Source: Macrostomum lignano
Taxonomy: Eukaryota
Direction of reading: 5' to 3'
Length of the DNA stretch: 64,000 nucleotides
Assembly: GCA_002269645.1 (NCBI GenBank)
Contig: NIVC01003283.1
Coordinates: 40,569 to 104,568, forward strand
Under the pieces are notes generated by a model. That model was not told the DNA's origin and made no database searches. It saw only the letters and a program-made list of their open reading frames with translations. Shown here piece by piece: positions 1 through 51,027 of this stretch; position 1 is the first letter of the stretch; every line of letters begins with the position of its first letter. The position numbers and the translations under genes were made by a program.

Positions 1-2270
1 AGTAACTCCTTCTGCAGGTGGTAGACCTCCGGCGGCGCAGCTCGTCAACATTGTGCACAGTCCGCTGGAGAGCGCCTTCTCTCTGGCGCAGCTTCTTGAT
101 CTCCAGTTTCAGCACGCGAATGTCCTCCAAGCGCTGGTTGTAACTGGCACTTCGCCCTTGTTCAGCAGCGACTGCTGGATCTTGATCTTCTCGTACAGCA
201 GGGCCAGCTCGTCGTTGCGACGAACCAGCTGCGTGCCGAGGATGTCCCTCTCGCTGACCAGCTTGTCCAGCTCCTTCTTCTGGCGAAGTCTCTCGGCATC
301 CGCCTCGTTGATCATCTTAGTCAGTTTCTTCTTCTCAACCTCCTGAGCCTCGATGTAGTCGCTGTTCTCCTTGTGCAGCTTTTTCATAGCCTGCAGCTCT
401 TTGCTGAGCTGGTCCTTCTCCTTCTCCACCTTCTGTCGCTCCATGTTCTCCTTGACCAGCTGGCCGTCCTTCATGGCCGTCTCCTCCTTCAGCTGGTCAA
501 TCTGGTGCGACATGATCTTGTGCTTCCGCTTCAGTTCCGTGATCTCATCCTGGGCCTCGATCAGGTTCTTGCTGTACAGGTTTCGGTCGCTGCGGACGGC
601 CTCGTACAGATTCTGCTGCTGCCGGAGGCGAGTCTCGGCCTCGGCAATCTTCTTCTTGTAGTCGAAGATCTGCATTTCGCGCACCTTCACATCCTCCATA
701 TGCTGTAGCACCTTCTGCGTCAGGTCTGAGGCCTCGTTGATGTACCGATCTCGCTCCTTTTCCAACTGGTAGATGATCTTCGCTGTTTCTGCGCCTCATC
801 TTTGTAGTTCTCAATCTCCTGCTCCAGAGTTTTCTTCGAGGCCTCGTGCAGCTTCACCATGCCGCGCTGCTTCTCCGTGGCGTTGGCCGCCTTGATGAGA
901 TTTTTGTTGAGAATGTCGCGCTCTCTGGTCAGCTCGTCGACAACCTTCTTGTCCTGTTCGTTGGCCTTCTTGATCAGGTCCATCTCTGCACAATGATGAT
1001 GGGACGGTGTTAGCGCGTGATAGAATCTCTTTTTGTAGGAACTGGTCCTCTAAACCAGTTCATGCATTCAAAGCCTGGTCTTACCCTTCTCCATGCCGTG
1101 AATCTCATTCTTGAGCTGTTCTCTCTGGCCTTCCAGGTTGCTTTTGTTGTCCTCGGTGAGGCGCAGCTTTCGTAGCGTCGTCTCGCGAACTCGCACGAGC
1201 TTTTGAATTTCACTCTTCAGCGAATTCACTTCGTCCTCGCGTTGCTGTGTTGTTGGTAAGACAGTGGAAATGTTTATTCCTGCTTTGAATATTTATTTTA
1301 AATATAGAATATCAGGTAATTATTTTAGACCATTAACTCACCTTGAGCTCTAGAGTCTTCGACTGGTTGTCTCCGATGAGCTGCTGCACCCGCTGACGCT
1401 GATCGTTGAGTACCATTGTGTCATCCTTGATCTTGGTCTCCAGGAAGTGCTGGTGCCGCTGGGCCTTCTCCAGCTCGGCTTTGGTCGCTCGGATCTCCTC
1501 CTCTCGGGTTTTGTTCTCCTGGGTCACCCCGGCCAGCCGAGATCGCAGAGTTTGAATCTCGCCCTCTTTAGCCTCGGCTTCCGCTTTCGCCTGTTTGAGA
1601 TCGCGCTCCATTTTCTCCTTCTTGCGCTGCTCGCGGGTGGCCTCGCTGTTCTTGGTTTGGATCTCCTGCTCCAGCTCGGCCACCTTCGTCTGACAGTCGG
1701 TCAGGTCCGTCTCCAGCCGCAGCTTTTGCGACTTGTTCTCTTCAAGCTCATCTCTCAGATGGCTGTTCTGCTGCATGAGTTCGTCGCGCTGCTTCGTAAG
1801 CTCCTCCTTTGCCTCAAGCAGCTCGCTGACGTTCTGATCCTGACCAGAGGTTAAGCCTGCACCCTGCTCCACCAGCTTGCTGAGATTGGCGATTTCCAGT
1901 TTCAAGCTCTGGATAGTGTCGCGAGCTCGGCCTCTTTGTCGTGAGCAGCGTCCACCATCTTCCAGGCTTTCTCGATCTCCTTTTTCAGCGAAGCAATGGT
2001 AGCCTGGTCTTCCTCTGAGAGTTTCAATGCAGAGGTCATCTTGGCCGAGTTGGCCACAATTTCAGCCTTGAGCTCGCGGCACTTCTGCATCAGTCGCTTT
2101 TCGCTTTCGTGGCTCTTTTGCAGGGCGCGCATCAGCTTCTCGTATTCGAGTTTGAACTTGTCCAGGCCTTTGTTGCCCTGCAGCTCCTGCAGCACTTCCT
2201 GGAAGTCTTTCTCAAGCGTGTCGAACGCTGAGTCATCCATCATACCCTTTTCCTTTCGGTCCTCCTTCTC
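1..2270 (-). CDS. CFAP58: Cilia- and flagella-associated protein 58 (CCDC147), partial. Exons 2270-1342, 1244-1085 and 985-<1, with several apparent small frameshifting indels.
   Basis: Translations DDSAFDTLEKDFQEVL, EIEKAWKMVDAAHDKE, KERDRYINEASDLTQK, QQQNLYEAVRSDRNLYSKNLIEAQDEI and RRNDELALLYEKIKIQQS match CFAP58 as I recall it. GT-AG sites are phase-consistent (AAG|gtgagt at 1342/1341, G|gtaag at 1085/1084, tgcag|AG at 986/985). An acceptor at 2271 precedes in-frame EKEDRKEKG-MM, so the true start may lie in an upstream exon. Confidence 0.95.
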
Positions 2271-3677: not shown

Positions 3678-4867
3678 TGTATGCATAGATACACACGCTC
3701 GTATAAGTACTAAGTAATCTAAAATTAGTGAGTTCTAGGAAAGAGTTTTGCAAAAGAATCGGTGACAATAAATAACAACAAAAAATTCTGTGCATTAAGT
3801 ACAACGCGTTCGTTGCAGGCCGGCTGATTAATTATATGAAGCCGTATTTAAGACAAAGAGACAAAATGAGTCACATGAGGCCTAATTATAAATTATGTAT
3901 TGAATTATTTTGTATTCAATGGATTATTATGAATTCCATTGTGCTGCTTTCGTTTTTTATACGCTCGTACATTGTGCAATTTATAGCTTTTTGCGTTCTA
4001 GTTTGAACTGCGGGCTTTTAATTTGGACACAGAAGTCAAGCAAAGCCCAGAGAATGCTGGCTAGTCTATGGCACAAACCAGAAGCAACTGACGGGCTTTT
4101 AAATTCGACAGTCATATTCGAATCAAATTTTTAACAAACACCAATTTACCATCTGAGGCCACAGATTCAAAATATTTATTATTTTCATAGAAAAATCTAA
4201 ATATAACCCGCAGCTTATAAAACACGGCATTTCACCCATCATTCATCCGGAAAAATGGAGAAATCTGAGACCGAAATCGTGGACGATTTTATCCAGCCTC
4301 GACAGGCCAGCCCAAGCTCTCGATATTCCGATTCGAAATTCGAGATTCGACAGGAAGCTATAAAGATCCCAGTCGCATAAATCCGTGTGGGATTAGCAGC
4401 ATCCACCGCCGCTGGTACAGTATAAGCCATTAGCAAAGTGCCCCACCCATCACTTCATTCTCTCTCCCTCCTGTTTCTCTCTCTGTCCGTCTGAGCGCTC
4501 CCTCCAGCGCCACTATTGGCCCATCCGTAGACACTGTTGCCGTTGGGAGGGGCCGCCGGCCTGCGCCACTGGCAAGTTTTTGGGCACGGCGCACGGCGCT
4601 AAGGTTGGTCGGGCAACACGGATGAAAGGGAGCGAGCATGCAGAGGCTGAGAGAGAGGGGGGAGGGAGAATAAAACCGGGCGTGGTTCGAGAGATCGCGA
4701 TGAGGCTCTGAGCATCTGAAACGCTCACACGAGCCACTCTGGATGCTCATCTATACTGACGCTGCGGAGATTAAGGAGCCAAACTGGTACGATATCCCCG
4801 GATTCATCTCAAGAATCTTGAGCAGTATCATCCCGGATAGCACGAGAAGACAGGGCAGCCAGCAACA

Positions 4868-7800
4868 ATGGAGACTCAATCGGGCAGCAGCGTAGGCGGA
4901 GTCTCTGGAGCTTCGGCTGAGTGAGTTCAATGATACAGAATCCCCATGGAACAGTGTGTATGAGCAGTTCAATGATACAGAATCCCCATGGAACAGTGTG
5001 TATGAGCAGTTCAATGATACAGAATCCCCATGGAACAGTGTGTATGAGCAGTTAAATGATACAAAATCCCCATGGAACAGTGTGTATGAGCAGTTCAATG
5101 ATACAGAATCCCCATGGAACAGTGTGTATGAGCAGTTCAATGATACAGAATCCCCATGGAACAGTGTGTATGAGCAGTTCAATGATACAGAATCCCCATG
5201 GAACAGTGTGTATGAGCAGTTCAATGATACAGAATCCCCATGGAACAGTGTGTATGAGCAGTTCAATGATACAGAATCCCATGGAACAGTGTGTATGAGC
5301 AGTTCAATGATACAGAATCCCCATAGAACAGTGTGTATGAGCAGTTCAATGATACAGAATCCCCATAGAACAGTGTGTATGAGCAGTTCAATGATACAGA
5401 ATCCCCATAGAACAGTGTGTATGAGCAGTTCAATGATACAGAATCCCCATAGAACAGTGTGTATGAGCAGTTCAATGATACAGAATCCCCATAGAACAGT
5501 GTGTATGAGCAGTTCAATGATACAGAATCCCCATAGAACAGTGTGTATGAGCAGTTCAATGATACAGAATCCCCATAGAACAGTGTGTATGAGCAGTTCA
5601 ATGATACAGAATCCCCATAGAACAGTGTGTATGAGCAGTTCAATGATACAGAATCCCCATAGAACAGTGTGCATGAGCAGTTCAATGATACAGAATCGCA
5701 GTGAGCTGGTGCAGAACCGAATAGCATAAACAACTAACAGATATATAAATTCCCTGGAAACCGCGTCACGCCCACACGCTTGCAGGAGCGGTGACACCGA
5801 GGAGGTGCTCAGCATGCGGAGCAGCCGCCTAGAATGCCTCACCGCCGGGCTGGTGCTCGCAGACCTGGCGCTCGTGACCCACCAGCTCGCACTGGATGCC
5901 TCCAGCGGCGAGTCCTCTGGAAATAAAAACTGTAAGAATTACAGTTGGTGCAAGAAGGAAACCAACAGTTAGAATTGATTAAAATAATCCATTTCAATAT
6001 TTCGGGACAAAAATGATTTCCAGATACGGTCACTGCTCCACCGAAATGGCAACAGGGCAGGAATCAGTTTTTCACGGCTGTTCTCATATTCAGCGTAATC
6101 TTCGTCATTGAGGTGAGTACATTCGTTTGTCGTCATGCTTTCACGTTTCCGCCTCTTATATATAAAAATATTGTTTTGTAGAGCGTCTGGCGAAATGGCA
6201 GAAATCTGATGAAACATCGACGGCTGCTTGCTTTGGATGTGAGACTTGGATTTGACGACAAATATGCTATTATTCGAATCCTAATTCAAACTTTTACCAT
6301 GTTAAACAAAACCTCAGCTGATAAGCAAGCCCTCACTCCTCCACCCACCTCACGCCTCCATCTACCTCACTAATCCAACCACTTCACTTCTCCACCCACC
6401 TCACTCCTCCACCCACTTCACTCCTCCGCCCACCTCACTCCTCCGCCCACCATACTCCTCCGCCCACGTCACTCCTCCAACCACCTCACTAACCCATCCA
6501 CCTCACTCCTCCACACACCTCACTCCTCCGCCCTCCTCACTCCTCCGCCCACCTCACTCCTCGCCCTCCTCACTCCTCCGCCCACCTCACTCCTCCGCCC
6601 TCCTCACTCCTCCGCCCTCCTCACTCCTCCGCCCACCTCACTCCTCCGCCCACCTCACTCCTCCGCCCACCTCACTCCTCCACCCACCTTACTCCTCCAC
6701 CCACCTCACTCCTCCACCCACCTCACTCCTCCGCCCTCCTGACTCGTCCAGCATCCACTCTGCAGCATCAAAACTAGAAAAAACCGTGACCCTTTTCTCA
6801 ACCAAGGCCTTCGACTGTTGCGTGTGCATCGGCAGCTGCTTGGTAAATTTCGGGCTGCACTTCAGCGGTGCCAAAAAACTGCTGCGAGACCTGCTAGCGC
6901 TGCTGGTGGCGGCTCGGCTAAGCAGGACCGTGCAGCTCTGCCGAGGTGAGCCGCTTCATAGAGCATTTGTTCAGGTAAAAATGACTTCGCGTAACTCAGG
7001 CACACCGCTGCAATGCAGGCCTGAGCTACACCGAAAAGCAGCGGCTCATTCAGCTGCTCAATAGTCAGCATCAAGTTGAAGCCGCCGGCGCTGAGAGGCT
7101 GCGAAAGCTGCAGACGGAACTGGCCAACAGGGACCTTGAGTGCCAGGACCTGCGAGCGCTCATCAAGGCAGCAACTTTGTCCAGACACCGGCTGAAGATG
7201 AGTGAGTTGCCTGGTTCAAAGTGTTTGCTTGCGGCCAGTCTGAGTATCTCATGGGTTATATCAGAATCTCATCTAAGGATCTCAAAGCTATCTCTAAAAT
7301 CTCATCTCAGTATCTCATGGGCCATCACTAAAATCTAATCTCAGAATCTTACAGCCAATTCTAAAAATCTCATAGCCAAATTTAAAATCTCATCCAGTAT
7401 CCCATAGCCAAATCTAAAATCTCATCTCAGTATCCCATAGCCATCTCCAAAATCTCATCTCAGTATCTCATAGTCATCAATGAAATCTTATCTCAGTATC
7501 TCATGGGCCATCATTCTAAAATCTCATCTCAGTATCTCATAGCCATCCCTAAAATCTCATCGCAGAGCAACAGTTGCAAATGGAGAAGCCGCTACCAGAG
7601 CATCGAATGCTGTCACCGCCGCCATCGACTCCAACGGAGCGAGTCTCCCAGCATCAGCAGCGCCATCACCCGTACGACTCGGGGCACAGCTCGGACTCGG
7701 CGCCGGAGAGCCCGCAGGAGCCGGAGCCGGCCGCGGCAATCCAGCCAGACGAGGACCAGCAGGTGATGGGTGAAGCTGCGGCATCAGAGCAAGGACAACT

Positions 7801-9655
7801 TAAGTTTAACAAAGTGACTTCAGTGGTCCTTGCATCCGAGACCGATAAGGCTGAAGGTTCGTGCTGGTGGGTCATGGGATTATGGAAAGTGGGTCATGGG
7901 ATTATGGAAAGTGGGTCATAGGATTATGGAAAGTGGGTCATGGGATTATGGAAAGTGGGTCATGGGATTATGGAAAGTGGGTCATGGTATTATGGAAAGT
8001 GGGTCATGGGATTATAGAAAGTGGGTCATGGGATTATGGAAAGTGGGTCATGGGATTATAGAAAGTGGGTCATGGGATTATGGAAAGTGGGTCATGGGAT
8101 TATTGAATCTGGGTCATAGGATGATATAATCGGAGTCATTGGATTATTGAATCTGAGTCATAGGATTTTGGAATCTGGGTCATGGGATTATTGAATCTGG
8201 GTCATGGGATTATGGAAAGTGGGTCATGGGATGATAGTGTTGTGAGCCCCGTCCTCCGGAGCAACGCCTACAGCTTTAACCTGTCGGGAAGCTGCGACCC
8301 CCAGGTCCCCAGTCAGAGCTCCCGTCCCGCGCCCTAGGGAGAAGCAGAAAAAGGACAGTAAATCGCGAACACGAACTTACACACCGTAGCCGATGCAATT
8401 CGCCGTGCACTTTTTATGGTAGATCGACGAGTCGTTTTAGTCAATAGCCAACGGAGGCGGACCAACGCGCGCAAGGGAGGAGTCTGCCCTCCAGACAGCG
8501 ACTATATATTTTTCATTGGTCCTACGCGTACATGAATATACCTTAAGAACAAATGTACGGTACAGCAGGGGAGGTGGGCGGGGTGGCGTGATCGGCGTAC
8601 GCATTGATTATTGATTGGAGGGGTGGGGCAGACTGGAGGGTTGGGGCGGGGCAGGAGGGCGAGAAAGGGCACGATTGCACAACAATAGAATCTGGGTCAT
8701 GGGATTATGGAACGTGGGTCATGGGATTATGGAAAGTGGGTCATGGGATGATAGAATATGGGTCATGGGATTATGGAATCTGGGTCATGGAATTATGGAA
8801 AGTTCGTCATGGAATTATAGAATTATGTCATGGGATGATAGAATATGGTTTATGGGATTATAGAATCTAGGCTATGCGATTATAGAATCTCGGTCATGGG
8901 ATTATGGAATCGGGGTCATGGGATTAGAAAATCTGGGTCATGGGATTATAGAATCGGGGTCATGGGATTATAGAATCGGGGTCATGGGATTAGAAAATCT
9001 GGGTCATGGGATTATAGAATCGGGGTCATGGGATTATAGAATCGGGGTCATGGAATTAGAAAATCTGGGTCATGGGATTATAGAATCGGGGTCATGGGAT
9101 TATAGAATCGGGGTCATGGTATTAGAAAATCTGGGTCATGGGATTATAGAATCGGGGTCATGGGATTATAGAATCGGGGTCATGGTATTAGAAAATCTGG
9201 GTCATGGGATTATAGAATCGGGGTCATGGGATTATAGAATCGGGGTCATGGTATTAGAAAATCTGGGTCATGGGATTATAGAATCGGGTCATGGGATTAT
9301 AGAATCGGGGTCATGGTATTAGAAAATCTGGGTCATGGATTGTAGAATCTGGGTCATGGGATTATAGAATCTGGGTCATGAGATTATAGAATCTAGGTCA
9401 TGAGATTATAGAATCTGGTTCATGGGATTACAGAATCTTGGGTCATGGGATTATAGAATCTGAGTCAAGGGATCGATTATATAAATCTGGGTCAAAGGAA
9501 TTTAGAATTTGGGTCATAGGATTATTGAGTCGGGTCAAGGGATTATAGAATCTGGACATTCGCAACATATCAGGCAACATCAACCTATCCATCATTGCAT
9601 TGCAGTTGTCAGTGAAACAGCAGCAGCGGAAACCGCAGGCCTTGAAGGAGATTAA
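4868..9655 (+). CDS. Divergent Hv1/HVCN1-like voltage-sensing-domain protein, about 363 aa. Predicted exons 4868-4920, 5786-5931, 6024-6112, 6182-6238, 6807-6945, 7019-7201, 7566-7856, 8274-8357, 9606-9655.
   Basis: Manual splicing using only GT-AG sites gives consistent phases and a 1092-nt CDS. S1 RSSRLECLTAGLVLADLALVTHQLALD aligns with human Hv1 [27 protein letters not shown]. S2 ends in FVIE (F150/E153 equivalents), S3 is FDCCVCIGSCLVNF (D174 and S181 equivalents) and S4 is LLALLVAARLSRTVQLCRG, followed by a coiled coil. The N-terminus and the last two exons are less certain. Confidence 0.75.
4921..5697 (+). repeat. 42-bp minisatellite, about 18 copies, in intron 1 of the Hv-like gene
   Basis: Unit gagcagttcaatgatacagaatccccat(g/a)gaacagtgtgtat. 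The array starts at the gtgagt donor. Confidence 0.97.
6333..6740 (+). repeat. About 17-bp C-rich minisatellite, intronic
   Basis: Unit ctcactcctccgcccac with variants. Confidence 0.95.
7250..7562 (+). repeat. Degenerate 40-45-bp minisatellite, intronic, ending at the acceptor
   Basis: Recurring aaaatctcatctcagtatctcatagcc. The last unit runs into cgcag| at 7565. Confidence 0.85.
7867..8232 (+). repeat. 22-bp minisatellite, block 1
   Basis: Unit gggtcatgggattatggaaagt. Confidence 0.95.
8690..9555 (+). repeat. 21-22-bp minisatellite, block 2, same family as 7867-8232
   Basis: Units gggtcatgggattatagaatc(g/t). In the middle of the block they show a three-monomer (66-bp) periodicity. Confidence 0.95.
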
Positions 9656-10151
9656 TTAAGGAGCGGACTAACAAAATCTGCCAATTCTATCTTACCCATA
9701 CAAAGGCAAACTTGCTTTGAAAATACTGGACAATACTGCAATTTAAAACGCTTACTGGGCTTGGCTTTTGTGTCTATTTTGCCCAGATATTTTTCCTATT
9801 TTTGAGTTAAGGATTGTTCTCACATCTCATACGGAGTTGCTTGAGTGCTCAAATACAGCAAGAACTCAATACACACCCGATGTGAATCGCGGAAAATCAA
9901 TATTTTCAAAAGCTATAAATTAAATAATGCTCTCGGCATTGATTTTTTTAGTTATAGTCATCAACCAATTACGTTGCGATGAATGCAAGGACCAATAGGA
10001 GTTTCAGGTATTTAAACTACACTCAATCATAGCTTATACACCCAATCAGGTAGAGAATTCTATTAAAATTCGGTATCAAATGTAGAAATAAAGATCTGTG
10101 GCAAGAATATTTGCTTTGAAATTCTCCTCCTGATCGTCTTCTTATCAACTC

Positions 10152-10388
10152 GATTGGCTTCATTGTCTATGGCCGAGAGCAGTTCTGTGGTAGAGTTTAT
10201 GATTGGCTTCATTGTCTATGGCCGAGAGCAGTTCTGTGGTAGAGTTTATGATTGGCTTCATTGTCTATGGCCGAGAGCAGTTCTGTGGTAGTGTTTTTAT
10301 TGGCTTCATTTGTCTATGGCCGAGAGCAGTTCTGTGGTAGTGTTTTTATTGGCTTTATTGTCATGGCCGAGAGCAGTTTTGTGGTAGT
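10152..10388 (+). repeat. 49-bp tandem repeat, about 5 copies
   Basis: Unit gattggcttcattgtctatggccgagagcagttctgtggtagagtttat, starting at 10152, 10201 and 10250. Confidence 0.9.
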
Positions 10389-13370: not shown

Positions 13371-15474
13371 TTAGCCATCCTCCTTTGGCGGAGTGAACCA
13401 GCCTTTCTTCTCGTGAATGTGCACCAGCGCCCGGAAGCTGTGCTGCGCCCTGGCCAGGCTGTAGGCATTCTTACTAGCTGAGAACTGCACCCGGGCCTTG
13501 CCTTTGACCAGAGTGGCCGAGATCTGCAGCACCAGAGACTCCAGGCTGTAGGCGGACGACCAGCCCTGGGTAGCGGTTGGTGGGTGGCATAAGTAATAAG
13601 TAGCACGTGACCTTGAGATTGCGGCTTGTAGCCTACACTGGAGAGGGGAACTGATGACCCTGAGGGACCAGAGAGGGGAACTGATGACCCTGAGGGACCA
13701 GAGAGGGGAACTGATGACCCTGAGGGACCAGAGAGGGGAACTGATGACCCTGAGGGACCAGAGAGGGGAATGATGACCCACAGCAAGCATCAGAGGGGGG
13801 AACTGATGACCCACAGCAAGCATCAGAGGGGGGAACTGATGACCCACAGCAAGCATTAGAGGGGGGAACTGATGACCCACAGCAAGCATCAGAGGGGGGA
13901 CTGATGACCCACAGCAACCATCAGAGGGGGAACTGATGACCCACAGCAAGCATTACCCAGCCCTAACCTGCTTGGTGAGCAGCTCCATGCAGATAGCTCC
14001 GCCCTGCAGCACATAGCCGTTGGTAAGCACGGGATTAACAACACGCACAAAAGGCGGCTCGAATGGGAATGCGTCTTTAAAATAGAATCCCAGAGTAATC
14101 CGGCCAGCGTCTGAGTCGCCATTCCGGCTGAGCTGCTCTAAGTCGCGCTGCAGCGGACTGTCCGGGTCAACGCGCAACAGGTGCACATGCCATTCGTACA
14201 GGCTGTCGTTAACCAGCTCAACGGAGAACATGCCAGCCTTCAAACTGGACGATCTGGGATTTGGGTTTAATAGCGAGTGTGCAATGATTACAACACTGTT
14301 TATATATTCGCAAATTGATTCACTACTTACTACTAACGAGGTTTGGCAGTAGAGTTTTTCAGCGATAAAATCTAGAAACAGTGAAACTATTCTTAGAAAT
14401 CCGGAACACGGCTCTGACTTTCTAATCGTGAGGCATGTACACTCTTCGAGCACACAAGAGCCCGTGCACAGGATTCGAACCAGGGGCATTTTGGTGCGAA
14501 AGGGTCAGGCGCGTCAGCCTTGTGAGTAGCAAGGAGAGGCCTGAGTTCAAACGCTCGCAAGCGTCACAGTGAGAGACTCACCTGTACAGCTCCTTTAACT
14601 CCTTCATAAGCCGATCTGTGGCCTGCACGGAGCCAAAAGCCGGGGCCGCCTGTTTAGCGTAGGCCTCCCGTTGCGCAGTTTTCAATCTGCGCAGCGTTTC
14701 AATATGGGCGCGCGAATCGATGCCGGCAAACTCGCACGACAGGTCGGAGGTAGCGGCAGCGTCGGCCGAGGCGAAGGAGGCGTTGGCGGCGCCGGATGTT
14801 GAAGAGCAGCCGCTCGGCTCCGAGCCGGCGATGCCGGAAGCAGCGTCCGACATGTGCAGATCGTCCTCGTAGTCCTCGAAGCCGGTGTCCTCCTCGTCCG
14901 ACATGCTGCTGCCAGCGGCGCCGTCATCGTCCTGCAGGTTTAATAATAAACCAAATAGTGCTACTTATAGTAGGCTAATGCGGAATAGTCGGAGAAAATG
15001 AACCAGAGTGGCCAGTTGGCATCAATAAAAACTTGAAAATTTGATATTTTTCATGTTGCGTGTCGCGTTGAGGGTCAGATATAAGTTAAGCTAAGCTGGC
15101 CATGGTTAGTAGGCAGTTAAACAGCCTAGATTCACACATCAAGGAAGTCACAGTGTCGGCGAGTGATCAGTTGCAAAACTTCTATAGAAAATGAAAACCA
15201 ATACAATAAGGCTTACAGCATCATGATATTCTTCATCATCATCTGCAGCGGCGGCGGCAGCTGCCCCACTTGCTTGGCGGCGTGTGGCGGCAGACGAGAG
15301 ACGCAGCTGGGCAACCTCGGGCGGCACAGTCAGGCCGAAGGAGGCGCACAGGCGGTCCAACAGACTGCAGGTCTGGCAAACCAGATTGCAATTTCGCGGG
15401 TAGGCCTCCTGCAGTTCGGCCAGCCCTGACGTCACTTTCTGATTGTCGGAGTCTGAGAACCACAGCGCTGGCGT
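13371..15474 (-). CDS. UBE2Q: Ubiquitin-conjugating enzyme E2 Q family, 5'-partial. Exons 15474-15217, 14931-14582, 14253-13968, 13565-13371.
   Basis: [64 protein letters not shown]|GWSSAYSLE and the C-terminus [14 protein letters not shown] are typical of UBE2Q1/2. All four junctions are GT-AG and phase-consistent. The N-terminal exon was not found. Confidence 0.95.
13636..13950 (+). repeat. Compound 30-bp (x4) and about 33-bp (x6) minisatellite in the last UBE2Q intron
   Basis: Units gaggggaactgatgaccctgagggaccaga and gaggggggaactgatgacccacagcaagcatca. Confidence 0.95.
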
Positions 15475-23550: not shown

Positions 23551-26500
23551 GTCGCCAAAGGCCTGGCCTTCCTCAACCGCGACTGCCGCCTGCTCCACGG
23601 TCGCGTCGTGCAGCCTCCGTGTTTGTCAATAGCGCCGGCGAATGGAAACTGTGGGCCTTTCAGCACACCGCGCCGCTGGGAATCCGTCTGGCGCGGTGGC
23701 TTCGGCTGGTGTTGAACTGCCTGACATTTACCTGCCTGGCGATGCGGACAGGCTGGTTAAGGCTGCCGACCGGGAGACCATCGACTCCTGGGGACTGGGC
23801 TGCTTCGTCTGGGAGGTTGGTTGCTTCATCTGTATTGGTGTATGCAAACTTGACTGGGGGTTCTGCCTGTTTCTCCTGTTTTGGGGATTCTTGTTGTAAC
23901 AACAGATTCTTGTTATTTTGATGGGTGAGATTTTGAATGGATTCTTGTTATTGTGATGGGTGAGATTTTGAATGGATTCTTGTTACTGTGTAATGGGTGA
24001 GATTTTGAATGGATTCTTGTTATTGTGATGGGTGAGATTTTGAATGGATTCTTGTTACTGTGTAATGGGTGAGATTTTGAATGGATTCTTGTTATTGTGT
24101 AATGGGTGAGATTTTGAATGGATTCTTGTTATTGTGTAATGGGTGAGATTTTGAATGGATTCTTGTTATTGTGATGGGTGAGATTTTGAATAGATTTCAT
24201 CGTAATTTTCATACCGTTTGTGGGAGAAAAGTGGGTTTTAGCCTAGCGGTCAGAGCGTCGGACTCACGACTTGAACGTCGGGGGTTCGATTCCCGATCCC
24301 ACATGAACAATTTGTGTCCTTGAGCAAGACACTTAACTCTGCACTGCTTCAGTTCACTCAGCATTAGCTGGGGTAATTGGGGTCCAGTCCTTGGACTGAA
24401 CAGCCGTACGCAGCCCTCAGATGCGCTCCATTGGGGCAGGTGTAATCAACTATTTTTTATTATTATTATTACTATTGTAGGAAAATGAAATGATTTCTCC
24501 AATTACTCAACCTGTCAACAGGTGTTCAACAGGCCGCTGACCTCGCGCCAGGATCTGCGCCAGTGGCCACGTGCCGCAGGCGCTGCAGCCGGCTTACGCG
24601 AGCTCATCCGCGACCGGGCGGCCCAGCGCTGCCCTGCGGCAGACTTTCTGCAGCGCTGCTCCAAGCCCGGCGGGTTTTCGATAATCCTTACACCAGGGCG
24701 CTGCTGCAGCTGGAGCAGCTGCACGTGCTGGCTGCGGAGGAGAAATCTCAGTTTCTTGGCCAGCTGGCGGAGCAGGTGAGATGCCCAGATTCTCTGGCTG
24801 ACCCTGCTTTGCTGTTTTTATCGACTCTAGATTAACAGTATCACCTACCCAGGTCCTAGCATGCACCCCTACCATTCCAGATCTGCCCCTACCATCCCAG
24901 ATCCGCCCTATCATTTCAGATCTGCCCTATCATTCCAGATCTGCCCTACCATCCTAGATCCGCCCCTATCATTTCAGATCCGCCCCTACCATTCCAGATC
25001 TTCCCCTACCATCCCAGATCTGCACCTACCATCCCAGATCCACCCCTACCATCCCAGATCCCCCCTTATTCCAGATCCGCCCCTATCATTCTTGATCCGC
25101 CCCTACCATTCCAGATCTTCCTCTACCATTCCAGATCTGCACCTACCATCCCAGATCCGCCCCTATCATCCCAGATCCGCCCCTACCATCCCAGATCCGC
25201 CCCTATCATCCCAGATCCGCCCTATCATTCCAGATCCGCCCCTACCATTCCAGATCTGCACCTACCATCCCAGATCCGCCCCTACCATCCCAGATTTGCC
25301 CCTATCATCCCAGATCCGCCCCTATCATTCCAGATCTGCCCCTACCATCCCAGATGCGCCCCTACCATCCCAGATCCGCCCTACCATCCCAGATATGCCC
25401 CTACCATCCCAGATTCGCCCCTACCATCTCAGATCCGCCCTACCATCCCAGATGCGCCCTACCATCCCAGATCCGCCCCTACCAATCTCAGATCCGCCCC
25501 TACCATCCCAGATGCGCCCCTACCATCTCAGATCCGCCCCTATCATCCCAGATCCGCCCCTACCATCCCAGATCCGCCCCTACCATCTCAGATCCGCTCC
25601 TATCATCCCAGATCCGCCCCTACCAATCTCAGATCCGCCCCTACCATCCCAGATCCGCCCTATCATCCCAGATCCGCCCCTACCATCCCAGATGCGCCCC
25701 TACCATCCCAGATCCGCCCCTACTAAATAAGGCAAGCTCACTCCCAATCGCAGCTGTCCAACTTCCAGACGACGTGGCCAAGCACAAGGTGCTGCCCCAG
25801 CTAGTCAATATTCTTCAATACGGCGGCGGCGGCTCGGAAGTTCTGCTGCCTCTGCTGCGCCTATCCCGCCTGTGCGACAAATCGGAGTTCGAGGGCCGCA
25901 TCGTGCCCTGCCTGATTCGCCTGTTCTCCCTGCCCGAACGGGTCGCCCGAGTCCGCCTGCTTGAGCAGTTGCCGTCCTACATTGGCCACCTGCCCGACCG
26001 GGTGGTGAACGAGCAGATTCTGCAGCCGTTCTGCCAGGGATTCCACGACACCAGCCCAGTTGTTCGGGAGCACACTATCAGAGCCGCCGTTCACCTGGCC
26101 GAGAAGCTCAACGCTAAGAATCTCAACGAGGAATTGCCCAAGCATTTGACAAGGCTGCAGGTGAGCTTCTTTTGCAGTTTAGCGGCTCTTTTTTAGCTTT
26201 TCGTGTCATTAGGGAGTGTTCTTGCCATTCAAATTTCTTTCATTTCACCTTTCATTAAAAACCTTTAAATGCGTGTCTTCACCCTTCATCATCAGAGGCC
26301 TTACAAATGCCTGTCTTCACCCTTCATCATCAGAGGCCTTACAAATGCCTGTCTTCACCCTTCATCAGCAAAGGCCTTACAAATGCCTGTCTTCACCCTT
26401 CATCATCAGAGGCCTTACAAATGCCTGTCTTCACCCTTCATCATCAGAGGCCTTACAAATGCCTGTCTTCACCCTTCATCATCAGAGGCCTTACAAATGC

Positions 26501-29500
26501 CTGTCTTCACCCTTCATCATCAGAGGCCTTACAAATGCCTGTCTTCACCCTTCATCATCAGAGGCCTTACAAATGCCTGTCCTCACCCTTCATCATCAGA
26601 GGCCTTACAAATGCCTGTCTTCACCCTTCATCATCAAAGGCCTTACAAATGCCTGTCTTCACCCTTCATCATCAAAGGCCCTCAAATGCCTGTCTTCACC
26701 CTTCATCATCAGAGGCCCTCAAATGCCTGTCTTCACCCTTCATCAGCAAATGCCCTCAAATGTCTGTCTTCACCCTTCATCATCAGAGGCCTTACAAATG
26801 TCTGTCTTCACCCTTCATCAGCAAATGCCCTCAAATGCCTGTCTTCACCCTTCATCATCAGAGGCCTTAGAAATGCCTGACTTCACCCTTCATCATCAGA
26901 GGCCTTACAAATGCCTGTCTTCACCCTTCATCATCAAATGCCCTCAAATGCCTGACTTCACCCTTCATCATCAGAGGCCTTAGAAATGCCTGACTTCACC
27001 CTTCATCATCAGAGGCCTTACAAATGCCTGTCTTCACCCTTCATCATCAGAGGCCTTACAAATGCCTGTCTTCACCCTTCATCATCAGAGGCCTTACAAA
27101 TGCCTGTCTTCACCCTTCATCATCAAAGGCCTTAGAAATGCCTGACTTCACCCTTCATCATCAGAGGCCTTAAAAATGCCTGTCTTCACCCTTCATCATC
27201 AGAGGCCTTACAAATGCCTGTCTTCACCCTTCATCATCAGAGGCCTTACAAATGCCTGTCTTCACCCTTCATCATCAAAGGCCTTAAAAATGCCTGTCTT
27301 CACCCTTCATCATCAGAGGCCTTACAAATGCCTGTCTTCACCCTTCATCATCAGAGGCCTTACAAATGCCTGTCTTCACCCTTCATCATCAGAGGCCTTA
27401 CAAATGCCTGTCTTCACCCTTCATCATCAAAGGCCTTAAAAATGCCTGTCTTCACCCTTCATCATCAGAGGCCTTACAAATGCCTGTCTCACCCTTCATC
27501 ATCAGAGGCCTTACAAATGCCTGTCTTCACCCTTCATCATCAGAGGCCTTACAAATGCCTGTCTTCACCCTTCATCATCAGAGGCCTTACAAATGCCTGT
27601 CTTCACCCTTCATCATCAGAGGCCTTACAAATGCCTGTCTTCACCCTTCATCATCAGAGGCCTTACAAATGCCTGTCTTCACCCTTCATCATCAGAGGCC
27701 CTCAAATGCCTGTCTTCACCCTTCATCAGCAAATGCCCTCAAATGTCTGTCTTCACCCTTCATCATCAGAGGCCTTACAAATGTCTGTCTTCACCCTTCA
27801 TCAGCAAATGCCCTCAAATGCCTGTCTTCACCCTTCATCATCAGAGGCCTTAGAAATGCCTGACTTCACCCTTCATCATCAGAGGCCTTACAAATGCCTG
27901 TCTTCACCCTTCATCATCAAATGCCCTCAAATGCCTGACTTCACCCTTCATCATCAGAGGCCTTAGAAATGCCTGACTTCACCCTTCATCATCAGAGGCC
28001 TTACAAATGCCTGTCTTCACCCTTCATCATCAGAGGCCTTACAAATGCCTGTCTTCACCCTTCATCATCAGAGGCCTTACAAATGCCTGTCTTCACCCTT
28101 CATCATCAAAGGCCTTAGAAATGCCTGACTTCACCCTTCATCATCAGAGGCCTTAAAAATGCCTGTCTTCACCCTTCATCATCAGAGGCCTTACAAATGC
28201 CTGTCTTCACCCTTCATCATCAGAGGCCTTACAAATGCCTGTCTTCACCCTTCATCATCAAAGGGCTTAGAAATGCCTGACTTCACCCTTCATCATCAGA
28301 GGCCTTAAAAATGCCTGTCTTCACCCTTCATCATCAGAGGCCTTACAAATGCCTGTCTTCACCCTTCATCATCAGAGGCCTTACAAATGCCTGTCTTCAC
28401 CCTTCATCATCAAAGGCCTTAAAAATGCCTGTCTTCACCCTTCATCATCAAAGGCCTTAAAAATGCCTGTCTTCACCCTTCATCATCAGAGGCCTTACAA
28501 ATGCCTGTCTTCACCCTTCATCATCAGAGGCCTTACAAATGCCTGTCTTCACCCTTCATCATCAGAGGCCTTACAAATGCCTGTCTTCACCCTTCATCAT
28601 CAAAGGCCTTAAAAATGCCTGTCTTCACCCTTCATCATCAGAGGCCTTACAAATGCCTGTCTCCACCCTTCATCATCAGAGGCCTTACAAATGCCTGTCT
28701 TCACCCTTCATCATCAGAGGCCTTACAAATGCCTGTCTTCACCCTTCATCATCAGAGGCCTTACAAATGCCTGTCTTCACCCTTCATCATCAGAGGCCTT
28801 ACAAATGCCTGTCTTCACCCTTCATCATCAGAGGCCTTACAAATGCCTGTCTTCACCCTTCATCATCAGAGGCCTTACAAATGCCTGTCTTCACCCTTCA
28901 TCATCAAATGCCCTCAAATGCCTGACTTCACCCTTCATCATCAGAGGCCTTAGAAATGCCTGACTTCACCCTTCATCATCAGAGGCCTTACAAATGCCTG
29001 TCTTCACCCTTCATCATCAGAGGCCTTACAAATGCCTGTCTTCACCCTTCATCATCAGAGGCCTTACAAATGCCTGTCTTCACCCTTCATCATCAAAGGC
29101 TTAGAAATGCCTGACTTCACCCTTCATCATCAGAGGCCTTAAAAATGCCTGTCTTCACCCTTCATCATCAGAGGCCTTACAAATGCCTGTCTTCACCCTT
29201 CATCATCAGAGGCCTTACAAATGCCTGTCTTCACCTTTCATCATCAAAGGCCTTAAAATGCCTGTCTTCACCCTTCATCATCAGAGGCCTTACAAATGCC
29301 TGTCTTCACCCTTCATCATCAGAGGCCTTACAAATGCCTGTCTTCACCCTTCATCATCAGAGGCCTTACAAATGCCTGTCTTCACCCTTCATCATCAGAG
29401 GCCTTACAAATGCCTGTCTTCACCCTTCATCATCAAAGGCCTTAAAAATGCCTGTCTTCACCCTTCATCATCAGAGGCCTTACAAATGCCTGTCTCCACC

Positions 29501-31065
29501 CTTCATCATCAGAGGCCTTACAAATGCCTGTCTTCACCCTTCATCATCAAAGGCCTTAAAAATGCCTGTCTTCACCCTTCATCATCAGAGGCCTTACAAA
29601 TGCCTGTCTTCACCCTTCATCATCAGAGGCCTTACAAATGCCTGTCTTCACCTTCATCATCAGAGGCCTTACAAATGCCTGTCTTCACCCTTCATCATCA
29701 GAGGCCTTACAAATGCCTGTCTTCACCCTTCATCATCAAAGGCCTTACAAATGCCTGTCTTCACCCTTCATCATCAAAGGCCTTAAAAATGCCTGTCTTC
29801 ACCCTTCATCATCAAAGGCCTTAAAAATGTCTGTCTTCACCCTTCATCATCAGAGGCCTTACAAATGCCTGTCTTCACCCTTCATCATCAAAGGCCTTAC
29901 AAATGCCTGTCTTCACCCTTCATCATCAGAGGCCTTACAAATGCCTGTCTCCCCTGCAAATCAGGTCAAAGACGAGCAGGGCGGCGTGCGCGCCAACGCC
30001 ACCGTGTGCCTGGGCAAGCTGGCTGGCCACATGGCCCCGGCAACGAGGCAGGGCCCCCTGCTGGCCCAGTTCCTCAAATGCCTGCGCGACCCGTTCCCGC
30101 CGGCGAGACAGGCCGCCCTGCTAGCCTGCGCGTCTACCCTGTCATTCTACACACTGCGGGACACCGCCTGCCGCCTGCTGCCGGCCCTCTGCCCGCTGAC
30201 ACTGGACCCGAGCAAAGAGGTTCGCGAGCACGCGTTCCAAGCTATTAACGCCTGTCTGCAACGCCTGCGCAAAGCGTCGGACAGTCCAGAGGAGGCAGCG
30301 GATCTCGAGAGTCAAGTGGCCGCCACTAGAGGCGCGGATTCCACTAGCAAGTCTTGGGCCAACTGGGCCGTGTCCGCTCTGTCAGCCAAGTTCTACAAGA
30401 CCGCCCCGTCTGCGTCTGCTGCCGCCCCCGCTGCCGCTGTACCATCCGCTTCGGCACCTACTCCGGCATCTGCTACTGCCGAGCCTACTAACAGCAGTAG
30501 TATCAGCAAGCCATTGCCGCCTGTCGCTAATACAGCTTCCGCTGCCGCTGCTGCCAATGCGTCGGTAGTTGCGCCAGCCACCACCGACTGGAACGACGCC
30601 TGGAGCGACGCTGACGATGACGGTGATTGGGGCAGCATCGAGGAGGCTGGATCGTCGGCGATGGAGAAGCAATCGGCATCAGGGTTGGCTCCGAGCTCTT
30701 CTTCCTCCGCTGCTGCCAGCGCCTGGGACACCAACTGGGGCGACGAGGAGGACGACACCCAGAAGGAGCCGATCCAGTCGGCGGTGGAGCCGCCGCCAAT
30801 TCGTGCGGCATTGTCGTCGGCTGCAAAATCCGGCGGCGGTGGACTCAAGCTTACTGGCGCTAAAAAGTTGGCGCCGAAATTGGCGCCTAGCGCCGGTAGC
30901 AATCTGGACGCCATCCTATCTGAAGAGATGGCCAGGCAACAGCTGGCACCGCAAAAGCAGCAGCAGCAGCAGCAACAGCCGATCCGAAATCCACAGAAGG
31001 AACAGAAGCACAGAAGGCAGCAGAAGAAACCAAGTGACGATGAGGATGATTGGGGAGCCTGGTAA
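23551..31065 (+). CDS. SCYL1: SCY1-like pseudokinase 1 (NTKL), 5'-partial. Exons 23551-23815, 24522-24775, 25754-26160, 29965-31065, with small apparent deletions in the first three.
   Basis: VAKGLAFLNRDCRLLH, VFVNSAGEWKL, DSWGLGCFVWE|VFN, KHKVLPQL, GFHDTSPVVREHT, RLQ|VKDEQGGVRANATVCLGKL, RDPFPPAR, DPSKEVREHAF and an acidic tail ending DDEDDWGAW match SCYL1 as recalled. Confidence 0.93.
23915..24192 (+). repeat. 35-37-bp minisatellite, 8 copies, in SCYL1 intron
   Basis: Unit gggtgagattttgaatggattcttgttattgtgat. Confidence 0.95.
24231..24476 (+). mobile_element. tRNA-derived SINE with a Deu/Nin-like central domain and (TTA)n tail
   Basis: A box tagcctagcgg (24239-24249), B box ggttcgattcc (24283-24293), acceptor-stem pairing gtgggtt/atcccac and a CAC anticodon loop. 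These are followed by gtgtccttgagcaagacacttaactctgcactgcttcagttcactcagc and a ttattattattatt tail. Confidence 0.85.
24860..25722 (+). repeat. About 20-bp C-rich minisatellite in SCYL1 intron
   Basis: Unit cccagatccgcccctaccat with variants. Confidence 0.95.
26275..29950 (+). repeat. 38-bp satellite-like array (about 3.7 kb, about 95 copies) filling a SCYL1 intron
   Basis: Unit cttcacccttcatcatcagaggccttacaaatgcctgt. The array ends about 15 nt before the acceptor at 29964. Confidence 0.98.
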
Positions 31066-41992: not shown

Positions 41993-44004
41993 ACGACTCT
42001 AACCAATAAGCGGTCTTGTGCCATTGTAACATGATTTAAATGTGTAAAAGCGTGCTTAAATGGCTCGTGATCGCGTATTGGCTATAGAGTCATTTAACGC
42101 ACGAGATATATATGTTGTGATTACAATGCTGGTTCTTCTTGCTATGTTATGGCCACATACGAGTATGGCCACATGTCTATGGCCACTCGTACGCTCTACC
42201 TATTCGCCTTATCTATTTGATCCCAAGTGTTAAAACTTGTGGAGATTATCAGTAGCTTATATCTCCTACCATAGACAGCGGAATTCTTCTTTTGGTATCG
42301 GTGCATTATAACATCTATATCCGTTGATCTCCGCTCCCTGTACAGATCCATCGCGGCTCACAGGCCGTGAATCCCATTAAAATATTGCACTTAAATTCAG
42401 AGATACTCTATGGCACAAACTCCAAAGAACTGAACCTCCTCGTTTCAGTGTATTATATATTTAAAACCACTTCGCGCCCAAGCTTGGTTCTGTAAGATGG
42501 CTTAAAAGCCCAAAGGCCTGCAGAGCAGTCCATAGACAAATTTGTCTTTTTTGCTGAATCGAGTGCACACCCTAGAAGCCCAGAAGTAAAGTATATTGTA
42601 GTGTTACTCCTTCTCGGGTTCTTTAAGATGTTCCTAGCAAATAGAACCCGCTGCTCCTGAAGAAGCTAGATAGCACCGCAGTACTACCTATCGATTTGCC
42701 TGAAAATGAACCTAAAACGTTAGCCGTGACTTGGTAGGGTTGCTGCCACCTTGGTGTGCGGACTCGACGCGTCGGCAGAGTTGTCTATCCGTCACCTGAA
42801 AGAAAAATAACAAAGTCGCTCGGAGCAAAGCCAAATCTGAAAAATGTCTCGACAGTCGATCGTCTTAGTAGAATGCTGCTCGAACCTGAAAACCTGAAAA
42901 CCTGAAATGAGAGAGAAGAGCTCGGAGGCAGAGGCAGCTCCAATCGAGGAAGCTCCCGAACGCGGCTCACGATCTGGAGAAAATGGCTCGCAGATGCTCC
43001 GTATTTATAGCCGAGCGGACCCCCAAAAGTCACGTGAGTTTCATGCGGTGAGCGCGTGAAACTTCCTTATTTGGTTACTAAAATCATGCGAGCGACGCGT
43101 GATTCAAGGCCAACTTCCAAATAAGGCAACCCTGCACGCAGCAGTGGCGTGACTCAAGGTCAGTGGCCACGCTCCAGCTAAGAAGACAGTATTTTGCTGC
43201 AGCCAATGTCCCGGAAATCCTGGTCTCTGTCCAGATCCATGCTAATTCATCCACGCTTTAATTCCCCTTTAACATTTCCCATTTGAGTGAAAACACAATG
43301 GAAATGCATAATGGACGTCTTTAAATCAGTCATGGCCTGCACAGCAGGCCATACTGGGCACTTGCTTTAGTGATTGGGATATGGTTTTTGATGCCATAGA
43401 CATTTTTCAATCTCTGGGTTTCTGGGCCGTTTCGGTATGGCCTGCAGTGCAGGCCTTTGGCTTCCAAATGGTTAAGCACTCAAAACCACAGATTTATACC
43501 TAAGGTATATTAATACCCATGCTGCAAGAATGAAAACGAGAAGTTGGGGTGTGAGGGGCGAGCCCCCCACATTCCAACCATAGACATTTCCACTTCAATG
43601 TAGGCTTAAATGTACGGTATTAAAGGGATGAATTAAGTCGCAGGCAAAAAGGTCATATAGAATCTGTGCTCAAAACCGACTATTCAACTCCTCAGTTGAG
43701 CACGCTTTTGACGTTTAATGCACGCTTTTTCATATTTGAATTGTGTTACAATGGACGTTTCGGGCACGCTTTTCTCCGCCAATGCGTTGTCTAATTATAT
43801 TTGATGGTTGGACTGCGTCAACAAACGCTCGAATGGCGCTATTTGATCAATCTGTCATCAAGCAAGCAAATGCAAATGCATGCATTATATTTTCATGGCT
43901 AGTCAGGCTGCTTCAATTCAGTCTAGTCAGCCTTGTTTTTGTAAGGGACTTTAACTCAAACAACTTCGCTACTCGGACCGGAAAAACGTGACAACTTATT
44001 GCCC

Positions 44005-44010
44005 TATAAA
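44005..44010 (+). promoter_or_regulatory. Candidate TATA box of the Glu/Lys/His-rich gene
   Basis: cccTATAAAt lies 79 nt upstream of the ATG at 44089. Confidence 0.5.
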
Positions 44011-44088
44011 TTTGCAGACCTCGTCTCCGACTCTGGTGACTTTCGCCGACGACGATTCACATACTCGACGACTCGCTCAATAGCAACC

Positions 44089-50448: not shown

Positions 50449-51027
50449 ATGCGCCCGCTAATCTCTTGCTGGCTCTTTGTAGCCGCTCTTTGTCTGACCG
50501 CCGTTGCCGTCAGCAACGCGAACTCCAACCTGGATGAAGACGATGACTACATTGGAGTAGCTCCTGAGCATGAGCAGCTCCGATACAACTCAAAAGGCCT
50601 CCGTAGAGATCTTCGTAAGTGGCAGTACAACGGCGGCATGTTCGGAAAACGGCAGTACAACGGCGGCATGTTCGGAAAGCGGCAGTACAACGGCGGCATG
50701 TTCGGAAAGCGGCAGTACAACGGCGGCATGTTCGGAAAACGGCAGTACAACGGCGGCATGTTCGGAAAACGGCAGTACAACAGCGGCATGTTCGGAAAAC
50801 GGCAGTACAACGGCGGCATGTTCGGAAAACGGCAGTACAACGGCGGCATGTTCGGAAAACGGCAGTACAACGGCGGCATGTTCGGAAAACGGCAGTACAA
50901 CGGCGGCATGTTCGGAAAACGGCAGTACAACGGCGGCATGTTCGGAAAACGGCAGTATAACGGCGGCATGTTCGGAAAACGGCAGTACAACGGCGGCATG
51001 TTCGGAAAACGGCAGTACGAAGAGTAA
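50449..51027 (+). CDS. Neuropeptide precursor, 192 aa, with 13 tandem amidated peptides of the QYNGGMF-amide type
   Basis: Signal-peptide-like MRPLISCWLFVAALCLTAVAVS, an acidic spacer, then 13 units of QYN(G/S)GMF-G-KR (30 nt each, 50623-51012). G-KR is the canonical amidation plus convertase cleavage signal. Confidence 0.93.
   Translation: MRPLISCWLFVAALCLTAVAVSNANSNLDEDDDYIGVAPEHEQLRYNSKGLRRDLRKWQYNGGMFGKRQYNGGMFGKRQYNGGMFGKRQYNGGMFGKRQYNGGMFGKRQYNSGMFGKRQYNGGMFGKRQYNGGMFGKRQYNGGMFGKRQYNGGMFGKRQYNGGMFGKRQYNGGMFGKRQYNGGMFGKRQYEE

Follow-up and report, generated by a model that had tools for sequence, protein, structure and literature searches.

A 64,000-nucleotide stretch of the genome of the free-living flatworm Macrostomum lignano (assembly GCA_002269645.1, contig NIVC01003283.1, positions 40,569 to 104,568 of the forward strand; hereafter the window) carries on its + strand an intact gene for a membrane protein of 305 or 334 amino acids (Table 1). 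Joining eight coding exons, here called the window gene, gives an uninterrupted open reading frame (ORF) of 305 codons, with the coding sequence (CDS) at 4868-9659 and GT-AG boundaries at all introns. Comparison with known voltage sensors leads to the conclusion that its spliced product, the window protein, is a likely member of the Hv1/HVRP1 (TMEM266) lineage of pore-less sensors.

The region from 4500 to 10200 is eukaryotic in character, with short exons and introns packed with tandem repeats. Repeats with units of 42, 17, 33, and 22 bp, in up to 40 copies, make up most of four of the seven coding introns. An in-frame stop at 4838-4840 lies within the intron upstream of exon 1. Two isoforms differ in the final junction: 7762 to 9606 gives the 305-aa protein, and 7856 to 9613 gives the 334-aa protein, both ending ...KQQQRKPQALKEIN. 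An earlier, sequence-only reading of this DNA had joined 7856 to 9606 and placed the stop at 9653-9655; that junction is out of frame with respect to both isoforms found in databases, which instead end at the TAA listed in Table 1. A tblastn search within the window found no second copy of the gene.

Table 1. Features of the window gene and of other genes in the window, in window coordinates.
Feature	Position	Strand	Details
Leader exon	4508-4603 (minimum length)	+	Untranslated; donor GT at 4604; no ATG in the known part
Exon 1	4841-4920	+	ATG 4868 opens the CDS; coding part 4868-4920; cytoplasmic N-terminus
Tandem repeat, intron 1	4924-5697		42 bp x 18.5
Exon 2	5786-5931	+	Helix S1 (LECLTAGLVLADLALVTHQLALDA); D44 = GAC 5862-5864
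Exon 3	6024-6112	+	S1-S2 loop and helix S2; F93 6101-6103; E96 6110-6112
Exon 4	6182-6238	+	57 nt; S2-S3 linker (SVWRNGRNLMKHRRLLALD); phase 0 at both ends
Tandem repeat, exon 4-exon 5 intron (6239-6806)	6331-6749		17 bp x 24.7; fills the intron
Exon 5	6807-6945	+	139 nt; S3 and S4; ends in phase 1 inside the G162 codon
Exon 5 codons	6813-6923	+	D118 GAC 6813-6815; N129 6846-6848; R152 CGG 6915-6917; S154 6921-6923
Exon 5 codons, end of S4	6924-6944	+	R155 AGG 6924-6926; Q158 6933-6935; R161 CGA 6942-6944
Phase-1 intron inside the Gly162 codon	6946-7018	+	CGA G/gt...ag/GC
Exon 6	7019-7201	+	Helical/coiled-coil extension of S4; conserved Cys203 (ECQDLR)
Tandem repeat, exon 6-exon 7 intron	7239-7565		Unit of about 33 bp
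Exon 7	7566-7856	+	Disordered Pro/Ser/Gln-rich tail with DSGHSSDSxPxSP motif; donors 7762 and 7856
Tandem repeats, last intron	7867-8232 and 8685-9555		22-bp unit recurring in two blocks
Exon 8	9606-9659	+	Acceptor 9606 (with donor 7762) or 9613 (with donor 7856); TAA 9657-9659
CFAP58 coiled-coil protein	109-2243	-	Pfam E 3e-91
Ubiquitin-conjugating-enzyme-like fragment	13953-14489	-	Weak
HEAT-repeat protein	24861-31065	+	Upstream part swamped by in-frame repeat arrays
Glu/Lys-rich repeat ORF	43999-45279	+	Extremely Glu/Lys-rich; signal-like hydrophobic N-terminal segment
Protein with two Myb/SANT domains	56905-57999	-	Presumably DnaJC2-like

Both halves of the gene are present in UniProt as M. 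lignano fragment models, at 99-100% identity to the spliced window protein. P0128 (A0A1I8IQA6) is the exact translation of 4508-4603 + 4841-4920 + 5786-5931 + 6024-6112 + 6182-6238. P0001 starts at 6807 and reproduces exons 5 to 8 exactly, with the junction 7762 to 9606, and P0006, from the same start, exactly matches the 334-aa isoform, with the junction 7856 to 9613. Every junction is thus matched exactly by M. lignano database models except that of exons 4 and 5: P0128 stops where exon 4 ends, and P0001, P0002, and P0006 begin where exon 5 does. Since a 17-bp repeat (x 25) fills the intervening intron, one transcript was presumably divided by a break in the assembly behind the models. For the N-terminal half, the databases contain two variants, which differ at just two residues, both outside the helices. 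A full-length model of the gene is absent from the databases searched, and the GenBank (BOX15) annotation offers no protein for it among the matches, only fragment models being found; the two halves in UniProt, and the automatic name of the paralogue, nevertheless mean that it is partly annotated.

That paralogue, P0127 (GenBank PAA67992.1, 342 aa), was named "Voltage-gated hydrogen channel 1" by the UniProt pipeline and is 34% identical to the window protein. Its single model covers S1, S2, the linker, S3, S4, and the tail. At the genomic locus, a 57-nt exon of phase 0 precedes a 139-nt exon that ends in phase 1 within a Gly codon, and these identical exon sizes and phases support the exon 4-exon 5 junction of the window gene. 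P0127 has three genomic copies (L001, L002, and L003, in GCA_002269645.1), and a pyruvate carboxylase gene comes after every one of them. The gene spans of the copies range from 3.1 to 4.2 kb, so their introns must differ; three copies fit the known recent duplication of the M. lignano genome.

Several other models call for caution. The paralogue isoform P0005 lacks the S2-S3 linker; this was rejected as a genuine feature, since P0127 and the genomic locus carry the 57-nt exon. P0129 is a chimeric model that includes one exon of the paralogue. P0002 ("DMAP1 domain-containing"; window 7553-7700) switches frame for part of exon 7 before regaining the original one, through either an alternative acceptor or an indel in a near-identical copy, or a modeling artifact. 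The names given to UniProt fragments (Ski_Sno, DMAP1, Cation_ATPase_C, and Si:ch211-160o17.6) look spurious, being domain-based or transferred; Pfam and PDB searches returned weak coiled-coil noise only, DMAP1 included.

The window protein has four hydrophobic segments on the Kyte-Doolittle scale, at approximately residues 31-56, 78-102, 109-137, and 136-160. A charged helical stretch of about 65 residues follows S4, and then a disordered tail of 73-102 aa rich in Pro, Ser, and Gln. The 305-aa ORF contains no pore segment (S5-S6) or enzyme domain, and Pfam detects no further domain. The earlier description of the protein, as a voltage sensor only, in which S4 is prolonged by a helix or coiled coil and neither pore nor phosphatase follows, is supported.

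An AlphaFold2 model was made for the paralogue P0127 rather than for the window protein. It shows helices at residues 25-70, 91-123, and 127-153 and one continuous helix at 158-252; the predicted local distance difference test score is 67-75 in the membrane helices and at least 90 at roughly 201-250, with a mean of 62. MAFFT places the post-S4 helix colinear with the Hv1 coiled coil, and by analogy it is probably a dimerizing coiled coil. The helix gives no match to PF16799 (VGPC1_C), and residues 163-230 alone score 2.2 bits against the Hv1 hidden Markov model (HMM) described below.

Two motifs are common to both paralogues: ECQDLR, whose Cys lies in the helix, and the tail motif DSGHSSDSxPxSP. 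The latter, in full DSGHSSDS(A/S)P(E/D)SP, lies at 7674-7712 of the window and at residues 281-293 of P0127, within tail sequence that is otherwise poorly conserved. We take it to resemble a β-TrCP-type DSGxxS phosphodegron. The 7-mer PESPQEP beside the motif also occurs in the C-terminal tail of Saccoglossus Hv1, in a copy read by optical character recognition (OCR), possibly as a low-complexity coincidence.

Alignment of the window protein to the Hv1 profile by hhalign yields a residue map to human Hv1. In S1, D112, E119, and D123 correspond to D44, Q51, and D55; in S2, F150 and E153 to F93 and E96; in S3, D174, S181, and D185 to D118, S125, and N129; and in S4, R205, W207, and R208 to R152, S154, and R155, followed by R211, N214, and G215 to Q158, R161, and G162. 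When the paralogue and the fragments of the window gene are aligned by MAFFT with 11 mammalian Hv1 proteins, the helices fall in the same register, from S1 through the post-S4 helix. D44 and D55 are 11 residues apart, as are D112 and D123 of Hv1 (D-x10-D). The S4 segment reads RLSRTVQLCRG, compared with RLWRVARIING of Hv1, and departs from the RxWRxxR/K signature. The sequence-only reading had arrived at the same equivalents for D112, F150, E153, D185, R205, W207, R208, R211, and N214, and the codons that it named for D44, R152, S154, R155, Q158, and R161 are all present; its view that S4 fits neither the Hv1 nor the TMEM266 motif also holds. D174 is retained as it claimed, as D118 in exon 5 and not as D115. 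The latter residue, at the end of exon 4, was rejected as the D174 equivalent: it is Asn in the paralogue, while D118 is conserved there.

The paralogue shares D44, Q51, D55, F93, E96, D118, S125, N129, R152, R155, and G162. Its S4 reads R-L-V-R-L-L-T-L-F-G, with Val, Thr, and Gly at the positions of W207, R211, and N214. Q158 and R161 are therefore specific to the window gene rather than shared by the family. The charge-transfer center (F93, E96, and D118) is present and conserved, and the D185 position is Asn in both paralogues. The signature of the family thus consists of the S1 Asp, the charge-transfer center, R1, and R2.

One intron also coincides with an intron of HVCN1. The phase-1 intron inside the Gly162 codon has the position and phase of the chimpanzee (human-type) HVCN1 intron inside Gly215 (locus L004; AAT G/gt...ag/GG), and an intron of the same type and phase is present in the paralogue. 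This is the only one of the seven coding introns to coincide with chimpanzee HVCN1; by a rough estimate, the probability of a chance coincidence is ~0.06.

Hv1 HMMs were built from Hv-type sequences that Chaves et al. (2023; PMC10377628) give in their supplement, with a canonical Hv1 profile of 18 sequences; three S4 segments in the reference set were restored. Against the Hv1 HMM, the window protein scores 20 bits (P about 1.5e-8; maximum 9.4 among 2000 local shuffles), P0127 scores 45 bits (3e-16), and P0005 scores 35 bits (maximum 18 among 2000 local shuffles). Profile comparison by hhalign is more discriminating. The family (window protein plus P0127) matches the Hv1 profile at 97.0% (E 1e-10) and the TMEM266-like profile at 95.9%; for the window protein alone, the values are 88.5% (E 2.7e-6) and 41.9%. 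The sensors of Ci-VSP, KvAP, NavAb, and Kv1.2 match at 0.1-2.8%, compared with 2.4% for a reversed control, and the window protein matches the Ci-VSP voltage-sensor domain (VSD) at 1.5%. A family profile made from the window protein and P0005 matches the single Hv1 proteins of amphioxus, Saccoglossus, human, and Limulus at 80-90%, among its best matches. In a neighbor-joining (NJ) tree the two flatworm proteins group together (298/300) and usually fall, with weak support, inside the Hv/TMEM266 group; there is probable long-branch attraction to Oikopleura. The family appears too divergent to place in Hv1 proper or in TMEM266, with the window protein alone leaning toward Hv1. "Hv1-like", the label first given to it, is apt insofar as hhalign places it with the Hv1/TMEM266 lineage and apart from Kv, Nav, and VSP; the protein is far more distant than that name suggests.

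An exhaustive phmmer search with P0001, the half from S3 to the tail, against 1.84 billion representative proteins found only M. lignano proteins and P0004, an 843-aa repeat protein (E 1e-4) that is regarded as spurious. A profile search again found only M. lignano; other Macrostomorpha are absent from these protein sets, and restriction of the family to Macrostomum is provisional. The family is small, very fast-evolving, and so far found only in M. lignano.

Comparison with named systems places these features in context. Like Hv1/HVCN1 (human Q96D96), its best profile match, the window protein has an S1-S4 domain without a pore, which runs straight into a helical C-terminal extension; a Gly after S4 whose codon holds a phase-1 intron; the S1 Asp in D-x10-D; F-x-x-E in S2; the S3 Asp; and both R1 and R2. 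Unlike Hv1, it lacks the S4 Trp, has Gln for R3, Arg at N214, Asn for D185, and Gln for E119, and it adds a 73-102-aa disordered tail and two extra introns, with no Ion_trans or VGPC1_C match. In TMEM266/HVRP1 (C15orf27), VSD, coiled-coil extension of S4, and disordered tail follow in a similar order, the helix likewise has a conserved Cys, and the residue at D185 is likewise neutral; against the TMEM266-like profile, the paralogue reaches 48 bits. TMEM266 has hydrophobic V111 and M185 at the D112 and D185 positions, and its S4 carries R208, R211, and R214 plus K213 (PMC6392501). Its S1 Asp position is thus Val and its S4 a complete RxWRxKR, where the window protein keeps Asp and has neither Trp nor R3. 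In addition, N129 is polar neutral rather than hydrophobic, the Gln at R3 has no preceding Lys, and the TMEM266 tail is ~250 residues long.

Other Hv-derived proteins have also lost consensus elements: Saccoglossus LOC102802600 (Gln in S1, no Trp); the "tryptophan-free" Hv of Limacina antarctica; an S4-deletion pair in Oikopleura; and Penicillium brasilianum Hv, with Gln at R3 (PMC10377628). Like the window gene, these are Hv duplicates particular to one lineage, changed in S4 or in selectivity residues and uncharacterized in function; the Limacina protein likewise keeps the S1 Asp without the Trp, and the P. brasilianum protein shares Gln at R3. However, none of them joins the absence of Trp and R3 to Arg at the N214 position, and the Saccoglossus, Limacina, and two Oikopleura proteins are still readily recognized as Hv, with 71-142 bits against the Hv1 HMM, compared with 20-45 for the window family. 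The molluscan AcHv3-type proteins (LPWRxxR) have lost R1 and kept proton conduction (PMC10377628), so changes in the S4 motif alone need not abolish conduction. Unlike the window protein, they keep Trp, R2, and R3, and have huge loops; AcHv3 matches the family at 67% by hhalign, and the window protein alone at 1.1%. VSP/TPTE proteins differ through their PTEN-like phosphatase and C2 domains, which ORF and Pfam analysis did not find in the window ORF, and Kv, Nav, and Cav channels through the S5-P-S6 pore that the window protein lacks after S4.

Many of the altered positions have been mutated singly in Hv1. W207S channels conduct, ~100-fold faster, and remain H+ selective; gating is unchanged in mouse R207Q (human R211Q), which also conducts; proton selectivity persists in R211A, R211H, and R211C channels and in channels truncated between R208 and R211; D185N conducts with a +36 mV shift; and E119A conducts (PMC4969798). 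These findings call into question the assumption, made in the sequence-only reading, that R211 is an established governor of selectivity. Its companion assumption, that N214R is an established block, is correct for Xenopus patches, the only setting in which no current was seen (Tombola 2008); in human embryonic kidney (HEK) cells N214R gives inward-rectifying conduction (Ramsey 2010; Sakata 2010), and in mouse Hv1 it conducts slowly (PMC4969798). Since N214R, in mammalian cells, and the other mutants still conduct, R161 does not imply a natural blocked channel.

The best overall explanation, and one that we consider fairly probable, is that the window gene encodes a four-helix VSD protein, with S4 prolonged into a long cytoplasmic helix, from a fast-evolving paralogue family of the Hv1/HVRP1 lineage. 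The family has kept the S1 Asp (D44...D55), the charge-transfer center (F93, E96, and D118), R152, and R155, and has lost the S4 Trp, R3, D185, and E119. S4 would move with voltage, carrying two charges, or three in the window gene if R161 counts. The D44-R155 pair could support some permeation selective for protons. Absence of the Trp would make gating fast, the dependence on voltage would be shallow, and R161 may give rectification or partial block. Such residual proton-selective permeation through D44-R155, with fast, shallow, rectifying gating, is slightly favored over a pure sensor, because the S1 Asp is kept at its exact spacing in two deeply diverged paralogues. The preference is tentative, and permeation itself has a little less than an even chance. 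Gene structure, architecture, homology, and the residue map are direct results; voltage sensing, dimerization, and conduction by the window protein are all properties that we infer.

Several observations weigh against this explanation. Database models leave the exon 4-exon 5 junction of the window gene uncovered. The ~35 Hv reference sequences come from an OCR'd supplement and are noisy, worst at the highlighted S4 residues. Against the Hv1 HMM, the window protein's 20 bits fall below NavAb (24) and Ci-VSP (44), and recognized Hv derivatives (TMEM266-like, Hv3, Oikopleura, Saccoglossus-2, Limacina, and Schistosoma) score 46-142 bits; by raw score, the family is more divergent than anything now called Hv-related. 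The likeness to a VSD profile that the sequence-only reading anticipated appears with the Hv1 profile and not with Pfam: the window protein, the paralogue fragment models P0003 and P0005, and P0006 match neither PF00520 (Ion_trans), which is absent even at E<=10, nor PF16799. Searches of the PDB by phmmer, including one with the profile of the window protein and P0005, found only troponin and DMAP1 coiled coils, and a Foldseek search of the PDB with the paralogue model found nothing at E<1, with KCNQ channels at negligible probability. Heptad periodicity in the post-S4 helix of the window protein is weak to moderate. A place in the tree among Hv proteins is the usual outcome, but the NJ split from Kv, Nav, and VSP has 45% bootstrap support, and the tree does not resolve position within the Hv/TMEM266 group. 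Finally, the joint effect of five or more substitutions is not predictable from single mutants, and TMEM266, although nearer to Hv1 than the window protein is, does not conduct.

The last point leads to the leading alternative. A pure non-conducting sensor, counting any role as a modulatory partner, has a real chance, somewhat short of even. In its TMEM266/HVRP1-like form, in which output would pass through the coiled-coil dimer and the tail, with its DSGHSSDSxPxSP motif, to cytoplasmic partners, it is quite possible, if well short of an even chance. The loss of Trp and R3 from S4, the neutralized D185 and E119 positions, and R161, at the site where N214R ended current in Xenopus patches (PMC4969798), all point in this direction. 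So do the disordered tail after the coiled coil, the helix Cys shared with TMEM266, the conservation of the tail motif between paralogues, and a divergence larger than that of the non-conducting Ci-VSP. TMEM266 neither conducts protons nor changes Hv1 on co-expression (PMC6392501). On the other side, the Hv1 relatives TMEM266 and Ci-VSP, both non-conducting, lack the S1 acidic residue, as does the Saccoglossus paralogue, for which conduction is considered unlikely (PMC6392501, PMC10377628). Both M. lignano paralogues keep this residue at the exact Hv1 spacing, and Hv1 still conducts in mammalian cells with each of the substitutions singly.

More specific variants fare less well. An Hv-lineage sensor whose third gating Arg has moved one helical turn inward (Q158/R161), with the Trp removed and the S1 Asp kept, might act as a plugged, purely voltage-sensing subunit that regulates canonical Hv1 or other partners, or as a channel with a filter made of D44-R155 only; this seems unlikely. 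A modulatory partner, forming coiled-coil heterodimers with a canonical M. lignano Hv1 and tuning or silencing it, is more doubtful still. Hv1 gating is cooperative within coiled-coil dimers (PMC6392501), and a suitable partner may exist: a 2012 transcriptome survey reported three M. lignano transcripts homologous to human HVCN1 (PMC3447372), probably canonical Hv since the paralogue itself has 25 bits to human Hv1 by BLASTP, and a Macrostomum Hv is named in supplementary Fig. S1 of PMC10377628. A search with human Hv1 (P0007, 100% identity) returned mammals only among the matches listed, with no M. lignano Hv. Against such a partnership, the post-S4 helix is far from the Hv1 coiled coil by its HMM score, and TMEM266, with a more Hv1-like coiled coil, left co-expressed Hv1 unaltered (PMC6392501).

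A functionless, decaying duplicate, surviving as a transcribed pseudogene in a recently duplicated and repeat-rich genome, would account for the very fast evolution, the confinement of the family to M. lignano, the fragmentary annotation with no BOX15 protein among the matches, and the introns full of tandem repeats. It is very improbable in view of the intact ORF over eight coding exons with canonical splice sites, the functional VSD residues and exon structure kept relative to a 34%-identical paralogue, and the two N-terminal-half variants that differ at two residues only, outside the helices. Least credible is a generic or convergent four-helix membrane protein that resembles Hv1 by chance or composition: the lack of Pfam, PDB, or Foldseek matches and an HMM score near that of NavAb would suit it, but hhalign gives Hv1 88-97% compared with <=3% for other VSDs and the reversed control, the HMM score exceeds all shuffles, S1 through the post-S4 helix align colinearly, which keeps all charge-transfer residues in register, and one intron is shared.

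Lineage-specific Hv duplicates with lost consensus elements are already known (PMC10377628), and the paralogue bears an automatic Hv1 name, so the window gene represents no new type of system; what is new is an undescribed, unusually divergent subfamily with a distinctive S4. The Hv1 field uses engineered mutants to probe the S4 Trp, R3, N214, and the S1 Asp. The window gene and its paralogue are natural combinations of such changes: no Trp; no R3; Arg or not at N214; and the Asp kept. Published surveys found Hv proteins largely by RxWRxxR and the S1 selectivity residue and would miss such families; the diversity of the Hv lineage is probably under-counted. If the window protein conducts protons, D112-R208 would be supported as a sufficient selectivity filter, and a filter made of D44-R155 only would bear on the long-standing debate over which Arg, R208 or R211, is the partner of D112 when the channel is open. 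If it does not conduct, it would be, after TMEM266, a second independent Hv-type sensor recruited to a role outside conduction, with the Asp still in place. M. lignano is amenable to RNA interference, in situ hybridization, and transgenesis, and hence to in vivo tests of cellular function.

Elsewhere in the window, besides the genes at the foot of Table 1, a 192-aa ORF at 50449-51027 (+) has a signal-like hydrophobic N-terminus and ~13 tandem copies of QYNGGMFGKR, with no Pfam match. Its layout is typical of a neuropeptide prohormone, which would yield amidated QYNGGMF through cleavage at the dibasic sites, with the Gly as amide donor.

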